A DNA stretch of 64,000 nucleotides from Tubulanus polymorphus (Eukaryota > Animalia > Nemertea): contig NC_134035.1 in NCBI RefSeq assembly GCF_964204645.1, forward strand, positions 2,170,001-2,234,000, written 5' to 3'. Below, one piece after another: positions 8,690 to 31,536 of this stretch. The notes under the pieces were generated by a model that was not told where the DNA came from, searched no databases, and worked only from the letters and a program-made list of their open reading frames with translations. The translations under genes were made by a program, and so were the position numbers. Position 1 is the stretch's first letter. Each line of letters opens with the position of its first letter.

Positions 8690-9697
8690 ATGTGTGAGTC
8701 AGACAGTCAGACGCGACAGTCGGTCCAGTCCACTCAAGACATGGAAATGAATTTTACTGAGATGCAAATCGGTCGAACCTATAGCAGTTACATCGTCATC
8801 ATGTCTGTGGCGAACAAGTCTGGAATCTACCGTACTGTGTCATTGGTCATTCTGCCTATATTGTTTCTGTTAGGGGCATTCGGAAATTCGGCTACTTTCC
8901 TGATAATGATAAGTCGCAGATTTCGGGGTTTATCTTACGCTAACTATCTGATCGTTTTGTCGATCGGGGATTTTATGTTCTGCATCAACCTATCTTTGAT
9001 GCCCGTTTTGCAGTTTGTTTTCTTATTCGTTAACATCGGTCCGATATTTCTGATGAATTCACTGATCAGTTGTCAAATCTACGAATTCGTAATGATAGTT
9101 GCGGCCTGTAATAGTTCCTGGTTAATCGTGGCTATATCTATAGAACGTGCGGCAGTTGTTCTCTTCCCGTTCACATCTCGTTTGATATGTACACCTAGAT
9201 TCGCTAGATTCGCCATATTGACGATAACTTCAGTGAATGTACTGATTCTTTATCTTCTACCTACTGTGTCGATGCATTTTTCTAACCAGTCTTTCGGATG
9301 TTACTATGAATTATTTGACCAATTAACATATTTCATCATAATTGTCATTCACCTTTATCTTCTACCTCTAATTTTGATAATTACATCAAATTCTGTTATA
9401 ATCGTTCAGTTATTCAGGGGTTCTGATGTGGTTTCGACCGATAAGAAAACTACAAAATCAAAACGTACAACGATAATGCTTGTAACAGTTTCACTCGCAT
9501 TTGCAATGTTTACACTTCCAACAACTATCGCAGTATTCCTACCGATCCCTTTGGAACAGACCGATTTTCTTTATGACGTGTTCACTCAGTTCCAATTGTG
9601 TAACTATGTCGTAAATTTTTACATATATCTTTTACTGGGACGAGAAATTCGTGAATATTTCTGCACACGATTACTTTGTCGAAATTCAAACAAATAA
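8690..9697 (+). CDS. Rhodopsin-class 7TM GPCR, family A paralogue 1 (likely start MNFTE at 8747)
   Basis: Intronless ORF with 7 hydrophobic segments, GN in TM1, ERA at the DRY position, a TM3/ECL2 Cys pair and NFYIY at the NPxxY position. The first 19 codons resemble the 5' UTR of paralogue 2. Confidence 0.92.
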   Translation: MCESDSQTRQSVQSTQDMEMNFTEMQIGRTYSSYIVIMSVANKSGIYRTVSLVILPILFLLGAFGNSATFLIMISRRFRGLSYANYLIVLSIGDFMFCINLSLMPVLQFVFLFVNIGPIFLMNSLISCQIYEFVMIVAACNSSWLIVAISIERAAVVLFPFTSRLICTPRFARFAILTITSVNVLILYLLPTVSMHFSNQSFGCYYELFDQLTYFIIIVIHLYLLPLILIITSNSVIIVQLFRGSDVVSTDKKTTKSKRTTIMLVTVSLAFAMFTLPTTIAVFLPIPLEQTDFLYDVFTQFQLCNYVVNFYIYLLLGREIREYFCTRLLCRNSNK

Positions 9698-11308
9698 TCA
9701 TTTAGAACTGTAAGTTTGATTTACCAATATTTAATACCGTGTTGTCAGAGGCCGTCAGAAAATGAGATTTTCGGTGCTTCCATGAATAATCAAAAATCAC
9801 TTTTTACTCTGTCAAGACGTCAATCTTTCTACTACCTGCAATACCAATGCATAGACTAAACGAATTTAAAAGGAAAAACAAAAACAAAGAGTTTTCAAAC
9901 TATATTTATTTACATATCGGACTTGAAACTACACATTAAGTTATTACCAAAATTTGTTGCAAGTTTTTGAAAATGTAATGCCATTTTTTAAATTTATAAA
10001 CATACATACATTATATCATATACGGACATTGAATATATAACGAACCCAGAAAAGGGTTTATGCTTCACGAAACTCGGTAACATCTAGGTACGAGGATAAC
10101 TCAATGGGCTGACGCAGTCAAGATTTGTATGTAGGATGTAATTTCCGAGCTGTGCTCGAAGAGATGACCTTCTGCAAACGCATTAATCAACATTCAGATG
10201 GATGTTTCGACAATTGCGGTTATTCTTATACAGTAATTAGCCAAATTGAACATAGATATCTTACACAATGGCAAAATCTACAATTATATGTTGGAATTCA
10301 TGAGATCGATTATTTTATCAGTACATAAACTATATGCAACTTTTTCGGCATTATCAATTTGTTTTTTTTTATTAGAAACTTGTGTGAGAATAGTTTTCTC
10401 CTCGCAAAAAAATTGAATGCCAATTTTGATGCCAAGGTATGAACGATTTCCGTTGATATAACGAAGGAAAATACATGTGTATCTTATTGAGATAGCTAAC
10501 CCCCCTTTCTACGGGCCTGCTAACTGACCACTAGACGGGTTTCACACGAGCCAAAAAAGCTCTTCTACTTTGACTTTCACGCGCTGTGCGGAATGATGTC
10601 GATAAATTCGGCATTCTCAGCAATAATAAAGAAATAATCACGTAATTTATGAAATATCAACTTCCATGAACGACTGTGTCCCTGCAGACCTAATGGATAT
10701 CATGCAATCATTTATGAATATATTAACTTTATTGTCAAAGAAGAAGACAATGATAACATAATAACATAATTAACAACGATGACGGATAACCGCATACAAG
10801 GATTTTGTGTATATTGGTGCGGATGGTAGAAAGAGGTCTTATTTCCACTATCCGTACAGGAAATAATAGATAACATTGTATCTTTAGAGTTATAAATTAA
10901 CAGACCCCCGTTTGACTTTAACTCTATATAAGTACTGGTGGAGGATGTTCATGTTACATGATTTACTTAAAGTTGGAAGTATTAGGATTACTGCGTATGT
11001 TTCTCGAAATAAATCTCCCCGGTTCTTCTCCGTAGAAAGGGCAGATTAGAAGTAAATGCAATTCGTCTTCTACTTCATTCATGTTACATAACTGACTAAG
11101 TCTCTCATTATATGGAATTGGGGTGCGTGAATAGAGAAGCGACGCACAATGTATGAAACTATATCAGGTTTGCAAGTAACGAAAATAGCAGCAGAACTTC
11201 AACGACAGTGTATACTACAATACGAATACTGTCATATTATCGCTGTAGGTCGTACGTGTGATTACAGCCCATCGATTCACTCCTTGAAATCGCTGAACAG
11301 CCTATGAT

Positions 11309-12340
11309 ATGGGCAGGAACGCAACCACCGGTACCACTGCCGCATCTGCAAGTGTTACTGAAACTTACGTTTGCCCGATACTCGATCTCCAAGTACGGAA
11401 ACATAATATTCTAGTCTATTTCATTTTTCCTGTATTCGCAATCGGTGTGATTCTCAATATTTTCAGTATCATTGTTTTGCGGAGATTGTCTGACAGCGGG
11501 CAAGCCATTCACCTTCTTATCCTCGTCGCGCTATCGGATATAATCTATCTTACAAATACATTCCTAGACGGTCCACTCCGTCACCTGATACATAGAGCCA
11601 TCTACGGAGACCTGACGTTTCGTCGATACGACTACGAGGTGTTTCCACTGTGGAACTGGATTCGAATTGCGTCCTATAAGTCGACGGTAACGATTCGAAA
11701 TTGGATGATAGTTCTCGCCGCGGTAGTTCGATGTCTTCACGTTTTGTTTCCATTCTGGTCACGGCGCTGTATTGACAGGAAAAAGATTCATATTTCTACA
11801 TTAATCATCATAATCATTTCTGTTGTTGCTTATGTCCCTCGTTATTTTGGTGCGCACATAGGCATGACTCAATGTAACGGTTCACCACGCAGCTTTCCTC
11901 GTCACCCGAAATTCTACAAAAGTCGCTCGATTGACAAGTTTAGCACTTTGGTGTTTATGTTATTAACTATATCCATCCCAGTCGTGTTTATTCTGTTTGC
12001 CAACGTAATTCTCTTGTGGTCATTGTATAGGTCCAGTAAGCTGCGAAAGTCAATGGCTACCAAAAAAGATGATAGATCTTCCGCAGCTAAAAACAAAGCG
12101 ACGCAGTTAGTTTTAATCACGACATTTGTTTATGTAGTGTGCGAGTTACCGACGCTCGTCTCGAGGGTATGGAACTATTTCGTTAAGAAAGGTTGGGACG
12201 AGGTGCTGCTCAGGTCTATATTTGTTGTTACCGATAATCTAACACCGATCGACTCGGCGATTAATTGCGTAATCTATCTGGTCGCTAGCAGATCATTTCG
12301 GTCAGCAGCGATAAACCTATGCAGAAAAAGTGTTTCCTGA
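11309..12340 (+). CDS. Rhodopsin-class GPCR, family B (FMRFamide-receptor-like, putative chemoreceptor)
   Basis: 343-aa intronless ORF with N-terminal NAT sequon, LALSD-like TM2, VRC at the DRY position, CELP in TM6 and DSAINCVIY in TM7. Confidence 0.9.
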   Translation: MGRNATTGTTAASASVTETYVCPILDLQVRKHNILVYFIFPVFAIGVILNIFSIIVLRRLSDSGQAIHLLILVALSDIIYLTNTFLDGPLRHLIHRAIYGDLTFRRYDYEVFPLWNWIRIASYKSTVTIRNWMIVLAAVVRCLHVLFPFWSRRCIDRKKIHISTLIIIIISVVAYVPRYFGAHIGMTQCNGSPRSFPRHPKFYKSRSIDKFSTLVFMLLTISIPVVFILFANVILLWSLYRSSKLRKSMATKKDDRSSAAKNKATQLVLITTFVYVVCELPTLVSRVWNYFVKKGWDEVLLRSIFVVTDNLTPIDSAINCVIYLVASRSFRSAAINLCRKSVS

Positions 12341-12993
12341 TTCCCTAGATTTCTATCAATCGGCCCAATACGCAACGAAAGATGTGTTAACTCAAACTAA
12401 TGATGTTTGTATCAATTTGTATCAAACTTTCTCGAAATTTATATTTCTATTTTCACGCATATTTCAAGTTTTACATTTTGTCATTTTCTCGAATGTTACT
12501 CGACGATCACAACATCTCATCAGGGAACTCGTGTGATTCCGTCACGATGAAAGAGAAACCCTTCGAAATCATTAGAATAATTAGATACAGAGTGTCTCAA
12601 GGCATTAAGGGTGTTCGCCTTTATCATTCCTGCATCCCACATCCAGATTTAGTCGTAAAATAACCCAATACACTGTGTTATATTTGCTGTATATTTTATA
12701 TAAATATAACTGTAAATTTTGTGAATAAAACATCTCAACTACAAAACAAAAACAAACCAAAACAAAAAAAAAACAATAAAACCTGATCTCTACATATTTT
12801 CTATGTAATGAATTTTATAGATATAAATCATAAATCTCCAGCCGATAGTGGTGCTGCAGGAACTGTCGGGAAAACTGTAAAAAAGCAGAAGTCATTTCAA
12901 GATTTATTCTTTGAATACAACCGACCCACCCCCCCCCCCCCGGACTAATCGGAAATCTCTTGAGTTTATGACGAGCAAACATGAATCCAATGG

Positions 12994-13944
12994 TTATTTG
13001 ACTGAATTTCTACAGCGGATTTTCATACAGAAATAGTCACGAATTTCTCGTCCCAGTAGAAGATAGATGTAGAAATTTACGACATAGTTACACATTTGAA
13101 ACTGTGCAAACATGTCGTATAATACATTTTTTACTTCTTCGGAGAGCGGTAAAAACACAGCAATAGTAGGCGGTAGCGTGAATACTGCGAATGCGAGTGA
13201 AACTGTTACAAGCATTATTGTTGTACGTTTTGATTTTGAGGTTTTCTGATCGGACGAAACCATTTTTGAACCTCTGAATAACTGAAATATTATAACAGAA
13301 TTCGACGTTAGAATCAACGTTAAAGGTATTATGTTAACGTAGATGACAATCATAGAGAAATATGTTATTTGGTTAAATAACTCATAGTAACATCCGAACG
13401 ACTGATTCGTAAATCTTAACGACAGAATAGGCGTGAGATATAGAAACAGTAAATTCACAGCCGTAATTATCAATGTAACAAATCTAGCGAATCTCGGTGT
13501 ACATATCAAACGAGATGTCAACGGGAAGAGCACAACAGCCGCACGTTCTAGAGATATAGCCACGATTAACCACGAACTATTGACGCCCGCAAGCGCCATT
13601 ACAAATTCATAGATTTGGCAACTGATCACCGAGTTCATCAAGAACACGGGACCGTCTTTAACGCGCAAGAGAACAAACTGTAAAACAGGCATCAATGTAT
13701 AGTTAATACAAAACACAAAATCACCGAGAGACAAAGCGATAAGATAATTTGCGTATGATAAATTACGAAATCTGTGACTCATCATAATCAGGAAAGTAGC
13801 TGGATTTCCAAACGCTCCCAAAATGAACGCGATAGGGAGAATGACCAGTGACACAGTACGGTAGATTCCAGACCTGTTCACTACAGACATGAGAGCGATG
13901 TAACTGCTGTAAGAACGACCAATTTGCACCCGAGTAGAATTCAT
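12994..13944 (-). CDS. Rhodopsin-class GPCR, family A paralogue 2
   Basis: 316-aa intronless ORF, colinear with 8747..9697, with the same ERA and NFYIY motifs. Confidence 0.92.
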   Translation of the reverse strand: MNSTRVQIGRSYSSYIALMSVVNRSGIYRTVSLVILPIAFILGAFGNPATFLIMMSHRFRNLSYANYLIALSLGDFVFCINYTLMPVLQFVLLRVKDGPVFLMNSVISCQIYEFVMALAGVNSSWLIVAISLERAAVVLFPLTSRLICTPRFARFVTLIITAVNLLFLYLTPILSLRFTNQSFGCYYELFNQITYFSMIVIYVNIIPLTLILTSNSVIIFQLFRGSKMVSSDQKTSKSKRTTIMLVTVSLAFAVFTLPPTIAVFLPLSEEVKNVLYDMFAQFQMCNYVVNFYIYLLLGREIRDYFCMKIRCRNSVK

Positions 13945-15083
13945 GATTCATACAGATCGAATGGAAGCGTGTACTGACTGTCGAGTGTACTGACTAACCG
14001 AGATTGAACTAACTGTCTAAAAACGTTCCTGAACTGACCGTGTCCTCTGGCGTATCGGAAAATTGATTTCACTTCAATATGAAAATGTCATTTAAGTCTT
14101 TGTTACAGCTACAGTTTCTTTGTAAGATTGATTGTTAACAGCGAATAGAAAATCGATTCTCAGAAATCTCACATAGTTTACTCAGATTCTTTTGAAAGTT
14201 TATTATTGTGTCACGAATAAACGTAGGTCTATCTAAATTAAATATCAATACTCGATGTCGTACAACAGTTCATCGTATATTGTGAAATATTTGATAGTAT
14301 AACACATCTGAACTGGTCGGAAATCAGTTCTACACAGCGAAACCACAGGTAAAAATAACATCAGTTCATTATTCAACCACATAGATAGACAGGTCCGTAG
14401 CCAGGAGTTCTAAAAGGCAATCAATCTTTATTTCTAAATGGGCGGGGGGGGGCGTTAATTCGTATCTCTGTTAATGTTCGGTACAAAACGTATCTCTGTT
14501 GGAGGATAACAACCGTAATAACTCGTGATAACCTCGCGAACATTTGATAATGATTTATCCTGGAATGAATTGATAATAATGTCCTATTTCGTGGTAGCTT
14601 TCATATTTTTGTTAAGAGATAAATAAAATCAACGTTACTATTACTTAATTATTGTCGACTGCGAATGAATCCGTTAATTGTTAGAGAATCTTACTAGGAA
14701 CTCAGGTTACGAAATGTTTAGTAATGTATAGGATATTATCGAACTAGATTATGAAGATAATCCTGAATGGAATGAGAAGAGGGTTTATTGAGATTTGTGA
14801 AATGTTTGTATTCGGAGGTAGTATTGGATTTTCGTTCACAAAGGCTGTTGTTGTGCCAACACATTCCGATGTTTCCAGTTCGGAAACAAGTCAGTACCAT
14901 AAACTATTTAGACTACATGCAACAGAAAGAGTTTGTCCTGGGCGCTGCAGAAACCGATCAACATTAAATTGATAAGGACAAAGGTGTAAATAAGATTGTC
15001 TCTTCCTCGAAATTATCAAGAAAACACGATTCTAATTCTTTATCGATTCATTCGTTTATTTCATATTTGAAAATGGTGGATTT

Positions 15084-18000
15084 TCATCGGCAGAAGCCGC
15101 AAGTTTTCTCGCAATTCTTTTTCATGTAACTGATATAAGTACTTTCAGTACAATATTTCGTCCAACCGGAACAGTTGACGTTCGTATCCTTGCACGATGA
15201 CGCTGAAAATAATAGGAAACTCATCGTAGACAATCATTCTTATTGTGTGATCGGACAGTTTTACAAGTTTTGTATGGTAAATGACTACGAGTCTGAAACC
15301 AGATTTTTACTTACATCCTCCTCCTGAACCTCCGCTGAAAATAGAAATTTAGATTTAGATGATACACATGATTATAGATGACTAAATTTGAAATAAATAG
15401 TATCCATGATTGTTCAGTACAGTTACAGTATAGGTCAGTAGCCGTTTCTTGCTATAGCTTATAGCAGTATATAGCAAGGTTATAGCAATTTCTTATGTCT
15501 CGCACAATGGGAAAACTATTTTTCTGGTAAATGGTTTTTCCTACTAAAGAACATCAATAACATTCAGGTTTTATGTTTGTTTCGTGATGTGTGCGTAATG
15601 AAATTTGGTCGAACTGTTTTACGATTGTAAACGCTTGAGTTGAATCGTGTCTTTAAACTCACCCGCAGAGATTACAAGTTTTTTTACAATTCTTCTTTAC
15701 GTAAGCGTTGGTGCTGCAGTAATTGGCCCATCCGCTACACGATGAGTTGGCATCGACGCAAGCTGCGATAAATCAAAGCGTAATTAGATTAGAAATGATG
15801 CCAGCGATGAAGCATCGATCTCTGAATAAAGGGAAAACGTGGACTGATATCGATCAAAGATTGATATTTTTCCTGTCGGTGACGACAGCGTTAACAATAT
15901 TACATTCATGTAAAGCATTTTGCAATGATGCGGGTCTTATCAGCTTATGTGCGGTCGGAACTGGCAGCCTTCAAATATTAAGCCTATGACAGTCTTATTA
16001 ATTTACTAATTTTCTAATATTTTCTATGAATTATCATTCATTACATCTAAACGCATCCATGTATCCGGGTTTCTTTGACTCAACTCACATGATCCTCCGT
16101 TATCTCCGCCGTTGCCTCCACTCCCGTTGCCCCCGTTGTCTCCTCCATCGGTTACCGAACAGCCGTACAATTTCTGTACCATTTTGATGTCACGACTGTG
16201 CAGTTTTCGAATGCCGAGTCGTGCGTTGGGATCTTTAGGAGTCATCGAAGGTTTTCCGTTAGAGCTATGAAAATAAACGTGTTGATCAGAATATGAAATT
16301 CCCAATGGAAGCGTTCCCGTGATGATGTCGTTATTTCATATGGTGTTTTCAATAAGATTTTATAAATGACGTTCAAATTGAATAAAAATGACAATTGGAA
16401 GGCCGGGGTCCGGAATAGATGAAAGAGAATTTCTCGAATAAATCAGCCAAATCAAAGGCCTCTATTGGGGTTCCGCCCTTTGTTTTAGTAAGACATTTTT
16501 GAAGAAATACATTCCAAAGTTTGCAATCTCTGAGAGGATACGTGTGACAAATTAACATGTTTTAACAATATCTATCTTGACGAAAAGGGAACGTAGGGGT
16601 CCAGACTCCCGAGACGACTCCCTAAATCTCCCCGTGATAAAATCCTCCACATACCTGAACGCGTATTTCCCGTATTGCATGACCGATGCATATTCGTATG
16701 GAAGCCCTTGATTGTTGGTGTTATCTATGTTGAAATTGTGTCTCTTCGCTGGAAATGGAGTTCAGATTTAAAACGAGTTTTTCGAATGTCACTTTAACTG
16801 CAAAATCGAATAATGATCTACAGACCTTCGGGGATATTCTCCCAGTTGATGGTCAGGTATTTGTCGCGATCGGAACGACATTGTTCGTGTTGAAATCCGA
16901 GAGCGTGTAGAAATTCGTGTTGAATCGTTCCGGCTCCGAGACATCCGTGTTCTTTCAGTGACATCATCTGTTTATTACGGACCATTCCAACGTACGACCA
17001 ACATCTACAAACATTCAGACGACTCACTAACTGAATTTTCGATTTGAATATGTTTTGCTATCTAAACAAAAGCGATTGGTAACGCGTGATTATTTCTTAT
17101 TATTTCTTTATTAGGAATTAGAACCTGGGATTTGAACCTGGATCTTTCGTCTGCCAGCCTTGTATCTAACCACTATAGACCACCAGGTTTTGGTGCACGA
17201 AATGAACGGGAAACAAAGAAGCATTCTCTGCTTGTTTCGCTTGTTTGGTGACTCGTTTAGCGAAACGATTAGCGACTACAGCATATTGACAACAGCGTTT
17301 CATTAAACACATCTCATATTTAGGAGCTTCGCAAAAAGCAGCAAAACAAGTGAAAAAACTAAATGGTTTACCCGGAACCGCTGTAGATCGAGATGTAATT
17401 TGTTTGGTCTGTTCTTTCTATGAACTCGATGCACGAACCGACCTTGTCCTGCAGTTCTTTCAGAGCACCGCGAATACGTGTTTGAGCGGAGGTACCTTAG
17501 ATAATAATTTAGAAAATGTTAAATCAGCTAAATTGGACAGAATTGACGTGAAGTAAATTTGAAGTATTTTTTCTCTAATACGCACTCATTTGTGACATAT
17601 CGTAGTAAATCTTTCCATTAGTCCATTTGCGCAAACGACTAGCCGCGTTTCTAAATGAATTCGGGACTCCGGCCATATCTCCTTCAAATTTCCCAGAAAA
17701 TTCTTCTAAATGAGTTCCTGCAAGACACGAAGCAGTAGTTAACTTTCCTCAGAATAACTCGATGTAGAAATTCTGACAGCCTCACTGTACTCAGTTCGTA
17801 TTTCTGCATTCCGGGACGTGAAAAAAAATTCATATTTATTTTGCATTTGAATCGAATGAAGAAACAAAAGTAAAATTACTCATCGCTGTTCAAGGGAAAA
17901 TAGAGAAAACCGCTTTAAAAATTGTATAATTCGTCCAAATTGGAAATTGGTAAGCTTTAAGTTGAATAGTTAGCTACAAGACATTTATATGAAAAAGTCC

Positions 18001-18698: not shown

Positions 18699-19086
18699 CT
18701 TGTGAGAAGCTTGGTGCAACAAGTAACAATAATCTACCCGTGGTCAGTCAGTATTTATGCTGAATCGCTATCGTTGAAAGATTAGCCGGACATGAAATAT
18801 TATGAGATTAATGACGAATTAATCGATTGCGTATATGTGGATTTTCTCACAGGTGCTTGGTGTATCATTATGTCGTGTTCACATCGGGATACGCGTAAAT
18901 TTCATTTGTTGTTTTAGTTTAGATGATGATAACGAAAACGCCGCCTTTAATCTCTGCTATAGCGTCCGAACATTTTAATCCGGATGCGAACTCAAACTGA
19001 ATGATTTTTGAGTTAAGTTAACCGGCCCTAGGTTTATGGCTGGTCGAATGTGCCGGTTCGAGCTAGATGATCAGATTTCAAGTATA

Positions 19087-19398: not shown

Positions 19399-19786
19399 TA
19401 TAGCATCTTATGATCCAACGACTTAAGAAGATTCTAAAAATTCTCGAGATTGAAAATAGTTTAACAACTACAGATATAAATGTTTTGCAGTTTAATACGC
19501 GTAGATTCAACGGCAATTAATGTTGCATACTATAGCCCTGGCATATTTAAATTGAACAATATATTGACCGTGTTACCTCGTCAGGTTCAATTTGAAACTG
19601 TTTATTGCAGTGAATGGTAAGAAATTATTTCATTCACGCACAACTTTCAGAGAATTGATTTAATCTTAAGACGACAATAAATTCATGTTCAGAGATTAAA
19701 TTAGTGAAATCAATGCCTACGCAAATATGTGACTTCATTTAATACACTTTAATACACGGAAGATCCATCAATGTCGCGTGTGAATA

Positions 19787-20737
19787 ATGAAGAATTCCAC
19801 TCAGTTGCACATTGCTAGACCTTACAACACTTATATCGTTCTCATGTCATTGGTTAACAAGTCGGGTATCTATCGCACGCGTTCATTAGTCAGTTTGCTT
19901 ATTTTGTTTCTGCTAGGGACCTTCGGAAATTTAGCTACTTTCCTGATAATGATAAGTCGCAGATTTCGAGGTTTGTCTTACGCTAACTATCTTATCGCTT
20001 TGGCTCTCAGTGATTTTCTGGTTGGCGTAGGTTCTACCCTGATGCCAGTAGTGCAGTTTATACTCGTGCAGCTAAACATCGGCCCTGTATTTATGATGGA
20101 GTCGCTGGTCATCTGTAAAATCTGTGAAGCTTTTATGGCATTCGCTGCGCCGAATAGCTCCTGGTTAATCGTGGCTATATCTCTAGAACGTGCGGCAGTT
20201 GTTCTCTTCCCGTTCACATCTCGTTTGATATGTACACCGAGATTCGCCCGATGCGCGATTGTCATTATCGTCACAGTTGATGCACTAGTAATATGCATTC
20301 CTCCAGCTACAGTGATCAAGTTTTCTGACCACTTTGGGTGTTATTACGAGTTATTCGACCAATTCATGATCTTTATGACGTACGTCGTCTATGCTTACCT
20401 GCTGCCGTTAGCGGTGATATTCATTTCGAATACTGTTATAATAATTCAGTTATTCAGGGGTTCGGAATTGGTTTCCTCCGACCAGAAAACCACAAAATCA
20501 AAACGTACAACAATAATGCTTCTAACAGTTTCACTCGCATTTGCAATATTCACACTTCCAACTGCTATTACTATTCTAATACCAATCTCCGCAGAACGAA
20601 GAGAATTTCTTTTAGACATATTCGATCTTTTCCTATTGAGTAACTTTTCAATCAATTTTTACATATACCTTTTACTGGGACGCGAAATTCGCGAATATTT
20701 TTGTTCAAAATTATGCTGCAGAAATTCAGACAAATAA
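19787..20737 (+). CDS. Rhodopsin-class GPCR, family A paralogue 3
   Basis: 316-aa intronless ORF, colinear with the other family A genes. Confidence 0.92.
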   Translation: MKNSTQLHIARPYNTYIVLMSLVNKSGIYRTRSLVSLLILFLLGTFGNLATFLIMISRRFRGLSYANYLIALALSDFLVGVGSTLMPVVQFILVQLNIGPVFMMESLVICKICEAFMAFAAPNSSWLIVAISLERAAVVLFPFTSRLICTPRFARCAIVIIVTVDALVICIPPATVIKFSDHFGCYYELFDQFMIFMTYVVYAYLLPLAVIFISNTVIIIQLFRGSELVSSDQKTTKSKRTTIMLLTVSLAFAIFTLPTAITILIPISAERREFLLDIFDLFLLSNFSINFYIYLLLGREIREYFCSKLCCRNSDK

Positions 20738-21936: not shown

Positions 21937-22872
21937 TCAATGTTTGCTTGAATTTCCACAACGTATAAATCTAATACAGAAATATTCACGAATTTCTCGT
22001 CCCAGTAAAAGATAGATGTAGAAATTAATCGAATAATTGAAAACCTGGAACTGAGTAAGTGTATCGATGATAAATTCTTTCCGTCCTGTAGAGATCGGTG
22101 CGAGTACAATAATAGAGGATGGTAGGGTACATATTGCAAATGCGAGTGAAACTGTTACTAACATTATTGTTGTGCGTTTTGCTTTAGTAGTTTTTTTCTC
22201 GACTATTTTTGAACCTCTGAACAACTGAAATACTATAACGGAATTAGATGTAATTATTAAAGTCAATGGAAAAAAGCAAACGTAGACAACGAAAGTGATG
22301 AAAACAGCCATTTGGTCAAATAGGTCGTAGTAGCAACCGAAGTAGGAGTTGGGGAAATGCATCGAAACAGTAGGAAGAATGCATAGAATTAGTACATTCA
22401 CTGCAGTAATTGTCAATGTGGCAAATCTAGCGAATCTCGGTGTACATATCAAACGAGATGTGAACGGGAAGAGAACAACTGCCGCACGTTCTAGAGATAT
22501 AGCAACTATCAGCCAGGAACTGGTAGAAGAAGCAAGTGCGATTGTAAATTCGTAGATCTGACAACTGATCAGTGAAATCATCACATATTTCGGACCAGTT
22601 TCTACGCGCAAGAGAACAAACTGTAAAACAGGCATCAAAGTAAAACTGATACAAACCAAAAAGTCAGCGATCGATAAAACGATCAGATAGTTCGCGTAAG
22701 ATAAACTGCGGAATCTGCGACTTAGCATAATGAGAAAAGTAGCCGAATTTCCAAAGGCTCCTAACATAAACAAGATAGGCAGAGTGACCAATGATATGGT
22801 GCGGGAGTTATCAGACTTGCTTGCCACAGACATTAGAGACAGGTAACTGTTGAATGGTCGACCAATCTGCAT
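21937..22872 (-). CDS. Rhodopsin-class GPCR, family A paralogue 4 (ancestral ATG at 22887 followed by a stop at codon 3; ORF restarts at Met6)
   Basis: 311-aa intact 7TM ORF. The upstream sequence reads ATG AAT TAA ACG CTG ATG, against MNSTQM in paralogues. Confidence 0.85.
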   Translation of the reverse strand: MQIGRPFNSYLSLMSVASKSDNSRTISLVTLPILFMLGAFGNSATFLIMLSRRFRSLSYANYLIVLSIADFLVCISFTLMPVLQFVLLRVETGPKYVMISLISCQIYEFTIALASSTSSWLIVAISLERAAVVLFPFTSRLICTPRFARFATLTITAVNVLILCILPTVSMHFPNSYFGCYYDLFDQMAVFITFVVYVCFFPLTLIITSNSVIVFQLFRGSKIVEKKTTKAKRTTIMLVTVSLAFAICTLPSSIIVLAPISTGRKEFIIDTLTQFQVFNYSINFYIYLLLGREIREYFCIRFIRCGNSSKH

Positions 22873-23500
22873 CAGCGTTTAATTCATAATTCACCAGACT
22901 GTGAGACTGAAGATAAATTCAATTAATTTCAGCCTTTCAGAATACGGTACTGCATGGATGTATGTTCAAGATTGAATGGTATTATTCACTGGCCAATTTG
23001 TTCAGAACCAATGGACGACTAGACATCTAATCCGTTGAAATTTGTATCTCATTTACAAGTTTCTCCAAATAGAAATAACGCAAACGTTTTATTCGACTCG
23101 GCAAACTTCTGCACAAGAGATTAATGAAAGTATATATTTGAAAATGCAAAATGTAATATCATTTCTACCACCGAGTTTTTAAAGAGTTCGTTTTCGTTCA
23201 TTTCAAATATCTAATTGTACAATTTTACTGTTTTCAAATATTTCCTCAAAATATCAAATGCCTTTTCCGGATTTTCCATTTGACGAGCATTTTACATGAT
23301 GCAACGTAACGTCGATTCAAATATATTTCAAATGTATCTATTTTACAAAAAGTGAGATGCCCTTGATGAGTGTTCCCGTGATGATTGCAGTGTGCTTAAA
23401 ACTATCATCATGATCGCTTCATGATTGTAAAATCGTTACCAGGCATGTCGTGAATTCAGCCTCTATCGATTCAACCGTAGATACGGCGGTGGTGGCTACA

Positions 23501-24532
23501 ATGACAGCTAATAGTTCCAATCAGTGTCCGCTGCAGCCGTTCACGCCGATCATTATAACATCCGTGGCAATTTTACCGACAGGAATTTTAGGTGTTATAC
23601 TGGATGTGATCACTGTATTTGTCTATCGACGCATTGCTAGAGCCCAATCGAACAAAGGCTTTAACTCTTCCACTTGGCTCATGCAGTTGTGGGCTGGGTT
23701 TGACGCAGTGGCGCTTTCTACGAGTTATTTGGGTACCTCACTGCAGTTTGCGGCTGCGCTAGTTGCTCATGGTGAGCTTGCATTTCACATTCACAAAGGC
23801 AACATTTTTCCATATTTCTTCCTGACTGGTCCAGCTGGAGTCGGCTCGGTGCTCGTGACTACGGAGCCATGGATGATCGCGATGCTTACAATTGATAGAT
23901 TCTTACACGTTTACGATCCGTTCCGAGCACCACGGTGGACCAGCAAATTCAACTTTTCATTAATTTTCAGCTTTGTATTGTTTTGTTCCGCATTTCAGAG
24001 AGTTTTACTGTTCATACCGTTTCCTGCATTTAAACCAATGACCAGTATTGACTTGGTCCCAGTCAGTTGCCCTTACGGATTACCCGGTTATGAAACAGTC
24101 TGGAGGAGAAATAACCTGGAGAAATTTCTATCTAGATTCAGCATTGGCATATACGGTGTGTTAATACCTGTATCAATCATAGCAATGTTCAATATTGGTA
24201 TTCTGATTGTAGTTTCCAAAAGCGCCCTTTCCATTAAACGAAATGTCAGTGTTCCTAAATCTCACAATGCCCGGGCAACCGCCGTCGTACTTTCAATTGT
24301 GTTCAGCTACCTGTTACTGAAGGGACCTGCTGCTATGATACATGTTTATCAGGGTGTCACACCACAGGGTAAAGCTCTGAAGGCCCTGTACAAGCGACCG
24401 TGGCTGTATGCTTGTACACGGAACATCGGTTCCTTTACCGGTATCGTCAATTTTATAGTTTTTTCATTTATAAACCCTACATTCAAAAAAGAACTCCGGA
24501 ACATGTTGTGCCGTAACAGGAGAAATAGATAA
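23501..24532 (+). CDS. Rhodopsin-class GPCR, family B (divergent)
   Basis: The ORF-track start at 23450 is GTG; the first in-frame ATG is 23501 (MTANSS, sequon). It has 7 TM segments, DRF at the DRY position and NFIVF in TM7. Confidence 0.88.
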   Translation: MTANSSNQCPLQPFTPIIITSVAILPTGILGVILDVITVFVYRRIARAQSNKGFNSSTWLMQLWAGFDAVALSTSYLGTSLQFAAALVAHGELAFHIHKGNIFPYFFLTGPAGVGSVLVTTEPWMIAMLTIDRFLHVYDPFRAPRWTSKFNFSLIFSFVLFCSAFQRVLLFIPFPAFKPMTSIDLVPVSCPYGLPGYETVWRRNNLEKFLSRFSIGIYGVLIPVSIIAMFNIGILIVVSKSALSIKRNVSVPKSHNARATAVVLSIVFSYLLLKGPAAMIHVYQGVTPQGKALKALYKRPWLYACTRNIGSFTGIVNFIVFSFINPTFKKELRNMLCRNRRNR

Positions 24533-25868
24533 AAATACCAACAGAGGCTCCTCTTATTCATTGTGTTTGTGTTTCAATTAAAGCCATAAAACCATGAAAT
24601 GTATCCGATTACGGATTAGGTCATAAAATATAGTCATGTCGTAAGCGAGATCTTGCATTCTTTTACAATAGTATATATGATTATCTTTCGATTGGTAAAA
24701 GGTCACCGCAAAGCACTGTACTATGATAAATGTGTAGATCATTAGCTTAATTTGTTATTCATTTACTTAAAAAAGATGTTAGATGTTAGATTCGTGAACC
24801 GTTCAATGAGCGCAGGAAATCCCAGCATAAGCGTTGGGATTTTCCATTTCCGATTCGTCATTAGAATTCATAAATGTATATTGTCACAAATTAAGTATTC
24901 GGACAAGCAGCCATTGATATTTTGAGGTATAAATATTCAAGATTAAAAAGATTGAAGTCAGTCGAATCCATCCATAAAAACACCTTAAAATAAGTAAGTT
25001 TTTTGTCTCGGAAACTGCGCCTTACCTCGTATAGTGTAAGCAGAACTATAAATGTAACACTGAGTTGAGAATTAGAAAAATAGAAAATTTTAAAAATGCC
25101 CGCTATCAAGTAAAGAAGAGTCTCTCTATATCCTGGTGCTATCCAAACCATAATGATCAATGGTTAAGAGGTTCTTGATTAATTGACTTGAGCGGTTTAT
25201 ACCGAACTGCCCGCAACCGAGTAAAGAGGAGTCTCTCTATATCCTGGTTTCATCAAAACCGTACATAATCGCAGGGCTTAAGAAGTTCTAATGCATTTTC
25301 AAACAGCCGATTAGTTTGATATTTATAAACCTAATAAACAATGTCAACCAAGCTTCTACTTTCGCAGAAAGTCCATATATACACTTACAGCAAACCTTAC
25401 CTAGCTCTTGTGAAGTTGGACCGGCAAAAAACTGATCCGAGTTAAGTGAAAGTCCGAGCTCAGGAAGGAAATGATTTCTTTTGTTTCTGCCCGAGTTGGT
25501 TCATGTGTTAGATAGACGTGGACTCTTAGATTCAGAGTCCATGGATAAACAGTGCATATTTTAAATTCTATTAAGAAAATTCGTTTCAGCGTGTTATACG
25601 TTTATATCAATAATTATTTCTAACATCGAATGTTTCCATTAAATGATATATATTAGTTAACATGTGCTTGTCTTAAAACTATTAATAAAAGTTCAGGCCT
25701 GACCTCATGTGTGGGCTCTCTCATTAGCCAACAGAGGTGCACTTACAACATCCATGGACGTATGAACTACTGTTTATACGTCCATGCTTCATCATAAGGC
25801 GTACAAATCCCACTTTGAAATAAGCTTAAAATACGGAAAAGGCCTTGTGTAAACCGTCATCAAAAATC

Positions 25869-26843
25869 TTATTTCTGACGATGTTTTGTCCGTGTAACCA
25901 AATCAAAGAGTATACGGCGAAATTTCGAGTTGGCCGCGACGTAAACGAAAAAGTTCAGAAACGAATCGTTCACCGACATCATTAGTGAAAACTTTCGCAA
26001 CGTACCTCGCCATGCAGCCTTACTACCGGCTAAAGAAGCCAGTCTATCGATACAGGGCGATATTTCACAGATAATAAACAGAAACACGATCATTAAAACG
26101 GTAGTCGTCGCCTGCGAAACGGATTTAGATTCTTTCCGTGTAGCGCCGAGTTCGGTCTTATTCGACGTGAGTTTAACGGCTTTGAATATGATTAGAAAAT
26201 TGAATATTATCAGCGCTAACATCGGACCAAAAGCTACAGCAACGTAATATCGCACATTATCTTTAACTGACTTGGGTAATGCATAGATTTCTAGTGATTT
26301 GTCACATATGTTTGGTCTGTAGCCATATTTTGCAGTAATTGCGCCGTGACAGCGCCAAATAACTGCAACCAGTAACAAAATGACAAAGACGATATTGAAT
26401 TTTGCTTTACTGATCCAACGTCGAGCAAAAAATGGAAAATATAAATTGATCACTCGGTCGGCCGATACAGCGGGAATAAACATATTCCTGAATTGTAGGG
26501 ATGTCCCATAAGCATACAAAGATGGTATAAAAAATGCGGGATAGACATTCGCTCCTCCGAGGCGGAATACCATAGTTCCTTTCAGAAAGTAGTATGCCGC
26601 AAATCTTACAGCAAAATAGAAAAAGGAACATATCAAATACAGAATATCAGCAGCGGCCAAAAGTTGTAGCAAGTGAAACGATACGATAGGAGATTGAAAA
26701 GCGCGTAAAACAATGATGTTCACGATATTCAAAACGACTCCAAATACACAAATCGGTCCAATGTAGAAAATGTTCAACATCGAAATGATTTCCCGACTCG
26801 GTCTCTCCGGGCAAAACAGACCTCCGTAAGTTGTTGCGTTCAT
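25869..26843 (-). CDS. Rhodopsin-class GPCR, family B (FMRFamide-receptor-like)
   Basis: 324-aa intronless ORF with NAT sequon, LAAAD, DRV, CEISP and NDSFLNFFVY. Confidence 0.9.
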   Translation of the reverse strand: MNATTYGGLFCPERPSREIISMLNIFYIGPICVFGVVLNIVNIIVLRAFQSPIVSFHLLQLLAAADILYLICSFFYFAVRFAAYYFLKGTMVFRLGGANVYPAFFIPSLYAYGTSLQFRNMFIPAVSADRVINLYFPFFARRWISKAKFNIVFVILLLVAVIWRCHGAITAKYGYRPNICDKSLEIYALPKSVKDNVRYYVAVAFGPMLALIIFNFLIIFKAVKLTSNKTELGATRKESKSVSQATTTVLMIVFLFIICEISPCIDRLASLAGSKAAWRGTLRKFSLMMSVNDSFLNFFVYVAANSKFRRILFDLVTRTKHRQK

Positions 26844-28367
26844 ATCTCAGTGAAGACAAATTGCTGAATGAATTCAATGAATATCAGCGAAACTGTAAGG
26901 ATGTCTCTATTGTGTTCAAGATTGAATGGTTCTATTCACTGGTCAATTTGCTCAGAATCGATGGACGACTGAATTTAATCCGTTCCAATTTGTATCTCGT
27001 TAGCAACTTTCTCCCGATAGACATAACGTTAAAGTTTTATTCAAAATCCTGTACGAGAGCAAAATGTGAAAATAACTTTTATTTATAGATCTTATAATGT
27101 AAAATATGATATCATCACTACAACCGAGTTTTTATAAAGAGTTCCATCTAGTTCATTTTCAGACCCCAATAAAGATATTGAATATGTAGATGTATTCATT
27201 TCTAGCTGTCGGAAATAAGATTTAAATTCAACGCGCTATTGCTGCGTGTGAAAATCAAAATACTATTGAAATCGAAAAGTTCACACAAGTTAGCCTCGAA
27301 ATACGCCGTCTTCAATCTTAAACAATTCTCAGATCTTGATCTTGATATTTTACTGCGTCTATGACTGCGTTGCCGCATATTGGTGACGCAAGGAGTTGCT
27401 CAATTCGGGCGAGCTTTGAGGTAGTGGTATACTACTTGCTTCAATTTCGCCCTATATGTACAGGCGTTTTAGTCCATGGTCCACTACAGATCTTGGGGAA
27501 AAGGTGTTACCGTACGTGATAATTCCGAGATGTACGGTACACTGACAGCTTGTTAGTATTTCCGCTGCTTGTGCGTGATGATACAGGAGAGATACAGTCC
27601 TCATTGGGGATGGCAATCGTGCCAGGTGATCTTTTGATCTAGTGAATTCACGGCGCTATGAATAACACCCTACCCCCAACAAAATTGATCACAACTATTT
27701 CTTATACAAATATCTACTGTCAAAGATATAAGCCGCAATTTGGACCGGACTAAAATTTGGCCCGTGCCTAATTAGAGAGCGCGCAAACCAATCATGCAAA
27801 AATACTGAAAAATGCTTAGAAAAACGAAGTGAAGTGAATCACTTTCAGAATCAGTTTTTATAGTTTGGATAATTCTCTAAACACTCGTATCATTAACATT
27901 CGTATCTCCCCCTCTCCCCTCTCCCCTCGCCTCTGTCCTCTCCTCTCCGCCCCTCTCTTCTCCCCCTCTCCCCTCTTTCCTCAGTTGTTCTATCCGTGTT
28001 TCCTCTGTCGTTCTAATTGATTCAAATATTGACTTAACCAATCTCGAGTTCATCTTTACTTCACAGAAATAACGTTTATATATGTTTATTCAAAGGTATT
28101 AAAAACATATAGCAACAAAATTTATAACATGCGAATTTAGTAAAATGGTGAAGAAGAAAAGAATTGTTTGTAGTAACTGGTGTTCTAGAGGCCGAGAACC
28201 TAAGTACCTCTCGCGTCGTAGTATTTATTTCCTTATGTCCTCCAAATCGGTTATCACTATTATTTTCTAGTATGTGCCAGATTTGAATAAATAATGCTCC
28301 TACGAGGCACCTGCACCTTATCATGCATCAACTCCTTGACTCCAACAACATGACTCCAAACTTGAAA

Positions 28368-29327
28368 TCAATGGTTATTTTTGACTGAATTTCTACAGCG
28401 GATTTTCACACAGAAATATTCACGAATTTCTCGTCCCAGTAAAAGATATATGTAGAAATTTACCACATAGTTACACGTTGCAAACTGAGTTGTAATGTCA
28501 TATAGAAAATCTCTCTGCTCCGGTGGAATGGGCAAAAATGAAGTAATAGTATTTGGAAGTGTGAATATTGCGAATGCGAGTGAAACTGTTAGAAGCATTA
28601 TTGTTGTCCGTTTTGATTTTGTAGTTTTCTTATCGGTCGAAACTATTTTTGAACCTCTGAATAGCTGAATCATGATAACTGTATTTGATATTAGAATCAA
28701 AATTAACGGTAAAAAGTTAATATGGATGGCCAGTATGACGAACAGTTTCAATTGGTCGAATAATTCGTGGAAACATCCGAAAGACTGGTCGGTAAAATGT
28801 ATTGATAAAGTAGGAAAAAGGTATAGAAACAGCGCATTAATTGCGGTTATTATCAATGAAGTCAATCTAGCGAATCTCGGTGTACATATCAAACGAGATT
28901 TGAACGGGAAGAGCACAACTGCCACACGTTCTAGAGTTATTACTACTATTAACCACGAACTATTGCAGGCTGCAAGCGCCATCATAAATTCATAGTTTTG
29001 GCAACTGATCACCGAGTTCATCATGAATATAGGACCATCGTCAACGTGCAAGAGAACAAACTGTAAAACAGGCATCAGAGTAAAATTGAAGCAGTACGTG
29101 AAATCACTGAACGACAAAATGATAAGATAGTTAGCGTAAGATAAACTGCGAAATCTGCGACTTATCATTATCAGGAAAGTAGCTGAATTTCCAAAGGCTC
29201 CAAAAAGGAACAGGATCAGCAGAATGACCAGTGACACAGTACGGTAGATTCCAGACCTGTTCGCTACAGACATGATGACAATGTAACTGTTATAAGTTCG
29301 GCCGATTTGCATCTGAGTAGAATTCAT
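28368..29327 (-). CDS. Rhodopsin-class GPCR, family A paralogue 5
   Basis: 319-aa intronless ORF, near-identical to 30583..31536. Confidence 0.92.
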   Translation of the reverse strand: MNSTQMQIGRTYNSYIVIMSVANRSGIYRTVSLVILLILFLFGAFGNSATFLIMISRRFRSLSYANYLIILSFSDFTYCFNFTLMPVLQFVLLHVDDGPIFMMNSVISCQNYEFMMALAACNSSWLIVVITLERVAVVLFPFKSRLICTPRFARLTSLIITAINALFLYLFPTLSIHFTDQSFGCFHELFDQLKLFVILAIHINFLPLILILISNTVIMIQLFRGSKIVSTDKKTTKSKRTTIMLLTVSLAFAIFTLPNTITSFLPIPPEQRDFLYDITTQFATCNYVVNFYIYLLLGREIREYFCVKIRCRNSVKNNH

Positions 29328-29872
29328 TTTTCATGCAGAACAAATGAGAGTGCTCTGAATGTCTGAGAGTGTACTGGAACTGATCGTATTTTCTCGCGTA
29401 TTGGAAAATTAATTTGACTCTAATAAAAAGATATCCTCAAAGTCTTTGTTAAAGCTGCAATTCATTTGTAATATCCATTGTTAACAGTGAATCAATAATC
29501 AATTCTTTGAAACTTTATACAATAGACTCAGATTTTGTAAAAATTTAACTAAATTAATTCTCAATATTCGTTGTACTAGAATTCCTTGTAACTGGTCGAA
29601 CATTATAAAGAGTAAAACATCTGAACAGGTTGGAAAATATCTGACATTTCTGTACAGGGAAAACACAGGTAAAATAACTTCAGATCATTATTCAGCTACA
29701 TCAATACATAGGCTCCTAGCCAGGAGTTCGTTATTTCTGAAATGTAAATTTTCTATTTTCTATTAGAAAGACAAATCACAGAGCTCCCGCATTCGACACA
29801 CACTCGTTTCTAAATCAATTCGACAAATAATTACGTTGCATAATTCGTTGATTGACGAGCGATTTGAAAACG

Positions 29873-30492
29873 CTCGCGCGCGTCTAATAAACTAGTTAAC
29901 CGTTAAAGTACTGTTCGTTTCGTTGTTTCTATATTCTACACCGATGTAGCAGGGCTATAAACCATGAAGATTGAGGGGTTAAAGGGGTAGGCGGGTGGAT
30001 CGGCCTTTAGAACACCAGTTACTACAAACGACTTCTTTTCTTTCACCTATACTAATATCACATATTGTTATAAATTATATTGCTATAAGTTTTTTAATAC
30101 CTTTGTTCTATATACATGTGAACGCAATTTTTGTGAACTTGAGCAAATATTGGTTAAGTCAATATTGCATCCCATAGAAACTGGTTCAGGAAGTGAACCA
30201 CAAACGAACAGTACTTTAACGGTTAACTAGTTTATTAGACGCACGAGCTTTCGCTACTAATGTATAGTAGCTTATCTCATTCACCTGATGAATCTACTAT
30301 ACAATAGTAGCGAAAGCTCTAGTCAGTAACCTGACTGTGGTTTAGCTTCACGATCGGATATTTTCACAAACAACATATAAGCCCATCCGATTATAAAAAG
30401 CTTACCACCAACGATTAGGTAACTAACTACGAAAGCTCGTGCGTCTATAAACAAGTTAACCGATAAAGTACTGTTCGTTTCGTTGTATCTAC
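29873..30492. mobile_element. Penelope-like retroelement pseudo-LTR remnant (direct and inverted partial copies)
   Basis: A ~50-bp block (ctcgygcgtctaataaactagttaaccgttaaagtactgttcgttt) occurs at 29873 (+), 30201-30250 (-) and 30432 (+). It also contains a hammerhead-like core with an inverted copy. Confidence 0.55.
30279..30327 (+). ncRNA. Minimal type I hammerhead ribozyme-like motif
   Basis: attcac-CTGATGA-at-ctactat-aca-atagtag-c-GAAA-gctc-TA-gtcagt: both conserved boxes, a perfect 7-bp stem II, and helix I pairing at 5 of 6 positions. Confidence 0.55.
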
Positions 30493-30582
30493 TTCGTTCA
30501 ATCTACAAGTAAGTAATCACTATTATTTTCTAGCTTATTGCATCGACTCCGTGACTCCAACAACATGACTCCAAACTTGAAA

Positions 30583-31536
30583 TCAATTTTTGACTGAATC
30601 TCCACACCGGATTTTCACACAGAAATATTCACGAATTTCTCGTCCCAGTAGAAGATATATGTAGAAATTTACCACGTAGTTACACGTTGCAAACTGAGTT
30701 GTAATGTCATATAGAAAATCTCTCTGTTGCGGAGGAATTGGCAAAAATGAAGTAATAGTATTTGGAAGGGTAAATATTGCAAATGCGAGTGAAACTGTTA
30801 CAAGCATTATTGTCGTACGTTTTGATTTTGTAGTTTTCTTATCGGTCGAAACTATTTTTGAACCTCTGAATAATTGAATAATTATAACAGAATTTGATAT
30901 TAGAATCAAAATTAACGGTAAAAAGTTAATGTGGATGGCCAGTATGACGAACAGTTTCAATTGGTCGAACAATTCGTGGTAACATCCGAAAGACTGGTCG
31001 GTAAAATGTATTGATAAAGTAGGAAAAAGGTATAGAAACAGCGCATTAATTGCGGTTATTATCAATGAAGTAAATCTAGCGAATCTCGGTGTACATATCA
31101 AACGAGATGTGAACGGGAAGAGCACAACTGCCACACGTTCTAGAGTTATTACTACTATTAACCACGAACTATTGCAGGCTGCAAGGTCCATCATAAATTC
31201 ATAGATTTGGCAACTGATCACCGAGTTCATCATGAATACAGGACCGTCTTTAACGTGCAAGAGAACAAATTGTAAAACAGGCATAATTGTAAAACTGACG
31301 CTGAACGTGAAATCACTGAGAGACAAAATGATAAGATAGTTAGCGTAAGATAAACTGCGAAATCTGCGACTTATCATTATCAGGAAAGTAGCTGAATTTC
31401 CAAAGGCTCCAAAAAGGAACAGGATCAGCAGAATGACCAGTGACACAGTACGGTAGATTCCAGACCTGTTCGCTACAGACATGATGACAATGTAACTGTT
31501 ATAAGTTCGACCGATTTGCATCTGAGTAGAATTCAT
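30583..31536 (-). CDS. Rhodopsin-class GPCR, family A paralogue 6
   Basis: 317-aa intronless ORF. Confidence 0.92.
   Translation of the reverse strand: MNSTQMQIGRTYNSYIVIMSVANRSGIYRTVSLVILLILFLFGAFGNSATFLIMISRRFRSLSYANYLIILSLSDFTFSVSFTIMPVLQFVLLHVKDGPVFMMNSVISCQIYEFMMDLAACNSSWLIVVITLERVAVVLFPFTSRLICTPRFARFTSLIITAINALFLYLFPTLSIHFTDQSFGCYHELFDQLKLFVILAIHINFLPLILILISNSVIIIQLFRGSKIVSTDKKTTKSKRTTIMLVTVSLAFAIFTLPNTITSFLPIPPQQRDFLYDITTQFATCNYVVNFYIYLLLGREIREYFCVKIRCGDSVKN

Follow-up and report, generated by a model that had tools for sequence, protein, structure and literature searches.

The window analyzed here is a 64,000-nucleotide stretch of the genome of the nemertean Tubulanus polymorphus, and it contains six intact, intronless paralogues of the class-A G-protein-coupled receptors (GPCRs). 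P1 (8747–9697, forward strand; 316 amino acids), P2 (12994–13944, reverse), P3 (19787–20737, forward), P4 (21937–22872, reverse), P5 (28368–29327, reverse), and P6 (30583–31536, reverse) were defined by their open reading frames and the Pfam 7tm_1 profile. All six match 7tm_1 (PF00001) at 57.5–65.4 bits, as compared to the cut-off of 30.5. At the presumed positions of the class-A signature residues (N in TM1, D in TM2, E/DRY, the proline in TM6, and NPxxY), the alignment reads GN, LSxxD, ERA (in which the R is kept and the Y is lost), TLP, and NFYIY (in which the P of NPxxY is replaced), with the helices placed by motif and hydrophobicity. The closest solved structures are the galanin receptors, at an E value of only 7e-8. 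P4 is without the usual MNST start, and its homology extends five codons upstream of the ATG. P5 and P6 share 95% identity in their coding sequences, but only 80% in the upstream flanks. By its TM4-ECL2 segment, P3 falls in a clade, designated “X”, apart from the other five genes, and in a whole-protein comparison the nearest relatives of P3 sit on other contigs.

How does the silent-site rate vary along these receptors? We calculated pS by sliding Nei-Gojobori over the codon alignment, using all pairs of the six paralogues except P5/P6. The gene-wide average is about 0.5, while pS drops to a minimum of 0.06 at alignment codons 131–150, corresponding to the TM3/ICL2 junction. It is 0.19 at codons 236–255, and about 0.33 at codons 46–70 and at codons 291–310. 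The synonymous rate is thus strongly uneven rather than uniform along the genes, and lowest in the cytoplasmic-face segments, a result in favor of the earlier note on this DNA. That note also described the ICL1, ICL3-TM6, and TM7-helix 8 segments as similarly homogenized. They are indeed reduced, but only about two-fold (pS about 0.2–0.35), and are less frozen than the TM3-ICL2 core. In P3, on the forward strand, these two-fold reduced blocks lie approximately at 19924–20001 (ICL1), 20428–20559 (the end of TM5, ICL3, and TM6), and 20653–20703 (the end of TM7 and helix 8). Contigs of paralogues pile up on the first and the last of them, and in the reads of another individual, paralogue reads pile up on the blocks. 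At the N-terminus, most of the shared residues in the first 25–30 codons use different codons, as noted earlier.

The TM3-ICL2 block is nearly invariant. Positions 9116–9193 of P1 and 20159–20236 of P3 are one base apart (ATA/CTA, a replacement), and the codons that they share have no silent differences, just as first reported; the identity between P3 and P4, originally put at 22 codons, spans 24 codons in the codon alignment. The wider block of low synonymous rate in P3 covers 20159–20251. It includes a 33-nt core at the end of TM3 and in ICL2, encoding the peptide LFPFTSRLICT. The core is the exact family consensus in P1 (9161–9193, forward), P3 (20204–20236, forward), P4 (22441–22473, reverse), and P6 (31090–31122, reverse), and has a single mismatch, in each case a replacement, in P2 (13498–13530, reverse; F to L) and P5 (28881–28913, reverse; T to K). 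Among the four-fold degenerate sites with a conserved residue, codon heterozygosity is below 0.1 at none of the 31 non-block sites and at 13 of the 58 block sites, including eight of the ten in the B1 core. The proposal that protein-level selection alone cannot account for the silent-site pattern is supported.

The core extends far beyond the window. Genome-wide, the 33-nt sequence of P3 has 182 exact copies, and 407 copies with three or fewer mismatches, spread over all 12 large contigs. The fully degenerate pattern for the core peptide has 296 genomic sites, and the reversed-pattern controls have none. The 93-nt block is 95–100% identical on contigs C2 and C4–C11. There is nothing unusual about the six genes within their family, a lineage-specific set of roughly 400 class-A GPCR genes without introns. 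This large expansion, with at least 126 hits scored among about 1,850 candidates, forms tandem arrays accompanied by truncated copies and relics. Its members are candidate chemoreceptors, judging solely by how large the family is and how it is arranged. A metagenome pattern scan for the core gave no hits, the search of sequencing runs matched solely Tubulanus polymorphus runs, and the protein relatives recorded in a word search are all from this same species. No paralogue contigs were found in a transcriptome-like run from 2015. In another run, X4 (type unspecified), contigs of paralogues are present and those of P3 and P4 are absent.

These counts bear directly on the main proposal of the earlier note, that conversion in short tracts, confined to the six clustered receptors, is what keeps their interface constant. 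A 21-nt haplotype common to P1, P2, and P3, and a tract in P3 that ends within the gene, both described below, speak for such exchange. However, the genome-wide counts already contradict it as the keeper of the interface, as the same nucleotides recur in about 400 copies on 12 contigs. Moreover, the nearest whole-protein relatives of P3 are on other contigs, and the block is equally invariant in genes without a neighbor in this cluster. We consider this explanation very unlikely.

Could the blocks represent the true neutral divergence of a young family burst, with the remainder of each gene having diverged unusually fast? The gene tree has the form of a star, and its inner branches are short, which speaks for a burst. 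In contrast, aligned non-coding flanks upstream of dispersed members share only 67–77% identity, a level that fits the pS of the whole gene but not that of the blocks; they do not reach about 95%. The flanks indicate that the family is old, and that the block, rather than the rest of the gene, is anomalous. Furthermore, outside the blocks dN/dS lies in an ordinary range, 0.22–0.36. A young burst is thus extremely improbable.

We next consider translation-level causes, such as codon optimality or a programmed pause, and an overlapping reading frame. Several codons of the core, CCG and CGT among them, are indeed rare. However, four different Leu codons are each fixed at their own position. Synonymous codons are therefore fixed by position and not by class, which argues against codon bias as the cause, and a sister subfamily varies them freely. 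As for the other frames, the +1 frame is closed by a conserved stop, the +2 frame lacks a start and stays open over only about 30 codons, and the antisense frame is open, but its wobble positions coincide with those of the sense frame. Explanations of this kind are hardly likely. At the RNA level, folding (z-score +0.97) does not explain the low silent divergence, and the blocks have no match in Rfam.

The model of the earlier note can also be scaled up to family-wide concerted evolution by identity-dependent ectopic gene conversion. The protein-constrained segments would stay alike enough to convert, even between chromosomes, while the ligand-facing segments would have escaped early. Such regional gene conversion has been described in the variable exons of the clustered protocadherins in fugu and zebrafish (PMC1852091, citing Noonan et al. 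2004), whose many receptor paralogues likewise combine a diverse part with one that is near-identical even at silent sites. In the present family, all four protein-conserved blocks have a low pS (0.06 at the minimum, against about 0.5), and the sequences are alike within the family but differ between subfamilies. Multi-site haplotypes discordant with the gene tree, a fragment (L050) that is a mosaic with L048 and has its breakpoint at the block, the high coding identity of P5 and P6 relative to their flanks, and the excess similarity of nearby pairs described below are also in its favor. Nevertheless, the following observations lead us to regard family-wide conversion as possible but doubtful.

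First, concerted evolution is expected to give the converted region a genealogy independent of the remaining sequence, and apart from local exceptions the two remain coupled. The third-position distance in the blocks climbs in step with the non-block distance, and the ratio of core to non-block distance is nearly constant, at 0.20–0.26 in every bin above 0.08. The Mantel correlation between the block and non-block synonymous distances is 0.48–0.50 (p 0.0002), and 0.46 with interchromosomal pairs alone; the control of two non-block halves gives 0.55. For the core alone the correlation is weak (r 0.20–0.23, p about 0.04), because few core sites vary. Separate trees of the N-terminal, TM4-ECL2, and C-terminal segments gave AU p values of 0.45–0.48, with power too low to reject a shared topology. 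Second, GC3 is 0.25–0.44 in the blocks and 0.42 outside, and is thus not raised as it is in the protocadherins (PMC1852091), although a criterion taken from that system may not hold for nemertean conversion. The homogenized parts of the protocadherins are, in addition, long 3′ regions with more than 99% identity within one tandem subcluster, while the core described here is 33–45 nt long in about 400 copies on 12 contigs. Exchange on this scale would have to be very frequent between chromosomes, over about 90 nt of homology. Two further analyses were set aside. A GENECONV-like permutation test gave signals in 289 of 861 pairs, each time within the same blocks, but it only rediscovers the rate heterogeneity along the gene, and was discarded as evidence. 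An analysis of homoplasy (retention index) on cross-validated trees found block sites no more homoplastic than held-out sites, on a tree that is too star-like for this purpose.

Third, dead copies of the genes are not homogenized. Eight dead fragments, a small sample biased by its selection on similarity, differ from the consensus in the blocks by 0.108 at codon positions 1 and 2 and by 0.239 at position 3, as compared to 0.029 and 0.129, respectively, in the intact genes. The fragments decay in the blocks at roughly their own neutral rate, and one of them has a stop and six private changes within the core. This argument is weakened by the fact that dead copies mutate at all sites, and could escape identity-dependent conversion faster than intact genes. 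Finally, a sister subfamily of four genes, three of which are tandem neighbors, retains the FPFTSR.ICT peptide with no dip in pS (0.22–0.55 in B1, as compared to 0.22–0.36 outside). Its tandem members thus do not homogenize the same segment. In L031/L032 and L033–L036 as well, the peptide is kept and the silent sites are different.

Some conversion has nonetheless occurred locally. The 21-nt haplotype at the 5′ edge of the block, “variant A” (20162–20182 in P3, forward), has 15 copies in the genome, 11 of which are on this contig. P3, which belongs to the other clade by the rest of its sequence, bears this P1-lineage haplotype, and fitting variant A to the tree of the non-block sites takes five changes (AU p 0.004). 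The short converted tract in P3 covers about codons 128–138 and stops before codon 162. In addition, pairs within 1 Mb of each other are 10–30% closer in the blocks than predicted (p 0.01). The suggestion that short conversion tracts are at work therefore holds for such local similarity, but not as the main cause of the constant core. Domain-restricted conversion is a feature of the chemokine receptor pair CCR2/CCR5. It has also been described for TLR1/TLR6 (PMC2077338). As in these pairs, segments on the signaling side are kept alike between tandem paralogues, while the ligand-facing parts differ. Those are adjacent pairs with long tracts, however, and only the local component, at the 5′ block edge of P3 and in the coding sequences of P5 and P6, is similar here.

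Within-genome analogues of a comparison between species point to constraint at the nucleotide level. The best reading of these sequences, to which we assign a probability of about one half, is purifying selection on an embedded nucleotide element, accompanied by minor local conversion. Synonymous constraint elements are functional elements embedded in coding sequences (reviewed in PMC4014394). As in such elements, the silent rate drops locally within the open reading frame, unexplained by codon usage, and here the constraint is also relaxed in the relics and absent in the relatives with the same peptide (the sister subfamily and L031–L036). Such elements are recognized by comparing orthologues of a single gene, while the present case involves hundreds of paralogues in one genome. 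Among the points against selection on nucleotides is that the four blocks of low synonymous rate are the most conserved protein segments, as conversion filtered by selection would naturally predict.

How might nucleotide selection operate in this family? The cytoplasmic-face segments are conserved at the protein level, like those of GPCR families in general. Beyond this, their silent sites evolve at about half of the background rate, and those of the 33–45-nt TM3/ICL2 core at a quarter or less. The most likely cause is purifying selection on an element that is read as DNA or mRNA inside the coding sequence throughout the family. The run of about 33 invariant letters may serve family-wide control, either as a target for base pairing or as the binding site of a sequence-specific factor. 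Short conversion between neighbors, as at the 5′ edge of the P3 block, would add a small local similarity without holding the core constant. More tentatively, the core may be an “address label” of the family, a putative DNA or mRNA element that lets one factor or small RNA recognize all of the approximately 400 genes. Such a label could serve collective silencing or the expression of one receptor per cell, and selection on the label, rather than on the protein, would freeze the silent sites.

Lineage-specific expansions of intronless rhodopsin-class chemoreceptors are a general pattern among invertebrates (PMC11526382). The present family resembles them in its hundreds of single-exon class-A GPCR genes, its tandem arrays, and its birth-and-death fragments, although its chemosensory role is putative. 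To our knowledge, no chemoreceptor family of this kind has been described in which the silent sites of a core are frozen.

When paralogues differ little at silent sites, the routine interpretation is gene conversion. This receptor family is a large and clean case in which the coupling to the gene tree, GC3, the dead copies, and the sister subfamily with the same peptide point to nucleotide selection instead. If conversion is the cause after all, then the family represents an unusually far-reaching concerted evolution among dispersed protein-coding genes. If nucleotide selection holds, then about 400 receptor genes bear a common embedded element, which would offer a direct way into the question of how a spiralian recognizes and regulates a very large receptor repertoire as one set.

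Nine open reading frames (ORFs) encoding rhodopsin-class GPCRs of 311–360 amino acids lie at 8.7–31.5 kb of the window. Six of them form one subfamily, with amino-acid identities of 62–76% (94% between P5 and P6): P1 (8747–9697, +), P2 (12994–13944, −), P3 (19787–20737, +), P4 (21937–22872, −), P5 (28368–29327, −), and P6 (30583–31536, −). The closest solved structures are those of the galanin receptors (E 7e-8). The three further GPCR genes interspersed in the cluster, at 11309–12340 (+), 23450–24532 (+), and 25869–26843 (−), are about 20% identical to P1–P6, and the nematode-type Srw/Srx profiles fit them at least as well as 7tm_1 does. No additional copy or pseudogene of the subfamily was detected inside the window by tblastn. 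P4 (21937–22887) lacks the MNST start of the family, and its start is probably shifted, since the similarity to the other members reaches 5 codons upstream of the first ATG. A 515-residue ORF with a GTG start (879–2426, +) has no Pfam match. Between P5 and P6 (30242–30322, both strands), the precursor model of mir-7563 gives a weak, palindromic hit (37 bits versus a gathering score of 80), which may be just a hairpin-like repeat.

The codon alignment reproduced the pattern that the earlier note had described. The P1 and P3 segments at 9116–9193 and 20159–20236 are one base apart, and this difference is a replacement. Between P3 and P4, 24 codons of the same TM3–ICL2 block show no difference, and most of the residues shared in the N-terminal part use different codons. 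Judging by the motifs in the alignment, this block (B1) would comprise the end of TM3 (with ERA replacing DRY), ICL2, and the start of TM4, and we read the remaining low-dS stretches as the probable TM1-end/ICL1/TM2-start, TM5-end/ICL3/TM6, and TM7-end/helix 8. Over the whole gene, pS is 0.34–0.58 (0.105 for P5/P6) and dN/dS is 0.22–0.36. The dS is indeed heterogeneous along the genes: in 20-codon windows over 14 pairs, the mean pS is 0.06 at codons 131–150, 0.19 at 236–255, and about 0.33 at 46–70 and 291–310. In sets of first 34 and then 45 members drawn from many contigs, the codon heterozygosity at conserved residues is 0.3–0.7 in most of the gene, versus 0.00–0.11 over the eleven consecutive codons of the B1 core. 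At 4-fold sites with a conserved residue, heterozygosity averages 0.42 outside the blocks (below 0.1 at 0 of 31 sites) and 0.25 inside them (below 0.1 at 13 of 58), and 8 of the 10 such sites in the core fall below 0.1. On these counts, the core is frozen, while the other three blocks, which looked similarly homogenized in the earlier note, are slowed only about two-fold.

The low-dS block is a feature of the whole family, not of the cluster. A search with P3 in the species' own 268-Mb assembly gave about 1,850 preliminary candidates, of which at least 126 were scored as matches, all with identities of 63–69% and spread over the large contigs C1–C12. The 93-nt block of P3 is 95–100% identical in all 40 scored places, on contigs C2 and C4–C11. 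The fully degenerate pattern for FPFTSR(L/F)ICT has 296 genome matches, and roughly 70% of the first 100 in the list have exactly the same codons. The 33-mer core (20204–20236), which is exact in P1, P3, P4, and P6 and bears one replacement change each in P2 and P5, has 182 exact copies in the genome and 407 with up to three mismatches; the reversed-pattern controls for this search gave 0 matches. The confirmed observation is much larger than the earlier note stated. The public record holds six proteins of the P3 kind for the species, one of them encoded at 100% identity on C12. The family seems almost wholly unannotated, because the whole genome contains hundreds of intact family ORFs as against these six proteins.

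Among sequencing runs, the gene was found only in those of the same species, and the peptide pattern was not found in the metagenome scan. The paralogue reads and contigs over P3–P4 pile up precisely on the four blocks. Run X4, of unstated type, yielded paralogue pieces only, with zero unique P3–P4 sequence, which would fit a transcriptome in which P3 and P4 are silent and other members are expressed.

Several simple causes of the frozen core were excluded. Between members on different contigs, roughly 350 nt preceding the ATG align at 67–77% identity, a level comparable with the silent divergence of the coding sequence, which excludes a recently arisen family whose variable regions have accelerated. 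Codon bias is ruled out, as Leu is encoded by CTA, CTC, TTG, or TTA and Arg by CGT or AGA according to the position. Regarding overlapping ORFs, a conserved stop closes the +1 frame inside the block, the +2 frame lacks a start and stays open for about 30 codons, and the wobble positions of the open antisense frame coincide with those of the sense frame. The block folds no better as RNA than its shuffles (z +0.97), and no Rfam family matches it. Upstream of the genes, about 330 nt are kept at approximately 70–77% across contigs, in the window (13945–14344, 29328–29727, and 31537–31936, all −) and at loci L017, L024, L025, L027, L029, and L030. Between this part and the start codon lies a variable number of ~18-nt tandem units of the CAGTCAGTACACTCTCA type (at least 10 copies in L017), and together they are probably a common promoter or 5′ leader.

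How much of the pattern is due to gene conversion among the six neighbors, as the earlier note proposed? Conversion does happen locally. P1, P2, and P3 share a 21-nt haplotype at the block's 5′ edge, and 11 of its 15 genome copies are on the window's contig. In the tree built without the blocks, eight intact carriers form one clade, P3, P2, L037, and L038 are placed elsewhere, and the haplotype requires 5 changes. The AU test rejected a single clade of carriers (p 0.004) and the core clade plus P3 (p 0.034). By site painting, P3 follows its own clade at all sites outside approximately codons 128–138; this run is over before codon 162, and the tract is therefore no longer than about 100 nt. The L050 fragment matches L048 at 98% identity 5′ of the block and at 84% 3′ of it. 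For P5/P6 (28368–31936), the coding sequences are 95% identical, the upstream regions are 80% identical over 577 nt, and just 54 nt downstream are alignable; either the entire coding sequence was converted, or a recent copy was overwritten by older flanks. Pairs within 1 Mb have smaller block distances than expected from their non-block distance (p 0.01), the difference being 0.019 overall and 0.036 in the core. These effects are small compared with the five- to ten-fold freezing of the core, and local conversion is thus a minor layer rather than the dominant signal.

Could conversion instead operate family-wide, in an identity-dependent manner? If the blocks came from a homogenized pool, then their silent distance would be independent of the distance elsewhere in the gene. 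The block silent distance climbs with the non-block distance, with a core/non-block ratio of 0.20–0.26 in each bin above 0.08. The Mantel r between block and non-block distances is 0.50 (p 0.0002), as compared to 0.55 for the control with two non-block halves; it is 0.46 for interchromosomal pairs only, 0.48 once the loci chosen by block variant are removed, and 0.20–0.23 for the core alone (p ~0.04). Raised GC3 in converted regions of the protocadherins has been taken as a mark of conversion (PMC1852091), whereas GC3 is not raised in the receptor blocks (B1 0.39, B2 0.25, B3 0.25, and ICL1 0.43, versus 0.42 outside).

The relatives of the family are also informative. L033–L036, about 40–45% identical to the family, retain FPFTSR.ICT and RTTIML.TVS, and 58–63% of their block third positions differ from the family, equal to outside the blocks. 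The fast lineage L031/L032 has silent differences in the blocks as well. Relatives with the same peptide thus vary silently, and the peptide therefore does not require these nucleotides. In the four-gene sister subfamily L052–L055, with three genes in tandem within 14 kb, pS shows no dip at B1 (0.22–0.55, versus 0.22–0.36 outside), and thus adjacency does not homogenize this segment.

An nhmmer search with the family profile revealed eight copies, truncated or reduced to relics, in the sequence flanking the studied loci. In the blocks, these dead copies diverge from the consensus by 0.108 at positions 1+2 and 0.239 at position 3, versus 0.029 and 0.129 for the intact genes, and their excess divergence is about the same as that outside the blocks. 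In the 600-nt fragment adjoining L049, the core contains six private changes as well as a stop codon. However, dead copies might escape an identity-dependent process sooner than intact genes, since they mutate at all sites. Family-wide identity-dependent conversion is a serious rival, albeit a less likely one in our estimate than selection on the nucleotides themselves.

Truncated copies were also observed in recurrent arrangements. Several intact genes are followed, 0.4–1 kb downstream and in the same orientation, by a TM7/helix-8-end relic of about 100–140 nt (L040:2745–2836, L048:2517–2635, L012:2914–3056, and L018:386–484), which may be the footprint of a duplication unit. The independent truncated copies L050:1184–1792 and L009:1–564 both stop at consensus ~660–668, where the TM5-end/ICL3 block starts, and this position could be a recurrent breakpoint. 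The full-length member L042 (C11:1828075–1831095 of the assembly G000) has a 2-nt deletion in the ICL3 block with the blocks otherwise intact, which reflects either a mistake in the assembly or very recent pseudogenization.

The bulk of the signal looks like a silent rate that is lowered to a constant degree at particular sites, and it is linked to the intact genes of this one family. We propose, with a probability of about one half, that purifying selection on a putative nucleotide element embedded in the coding sequence would hold these silent sites.
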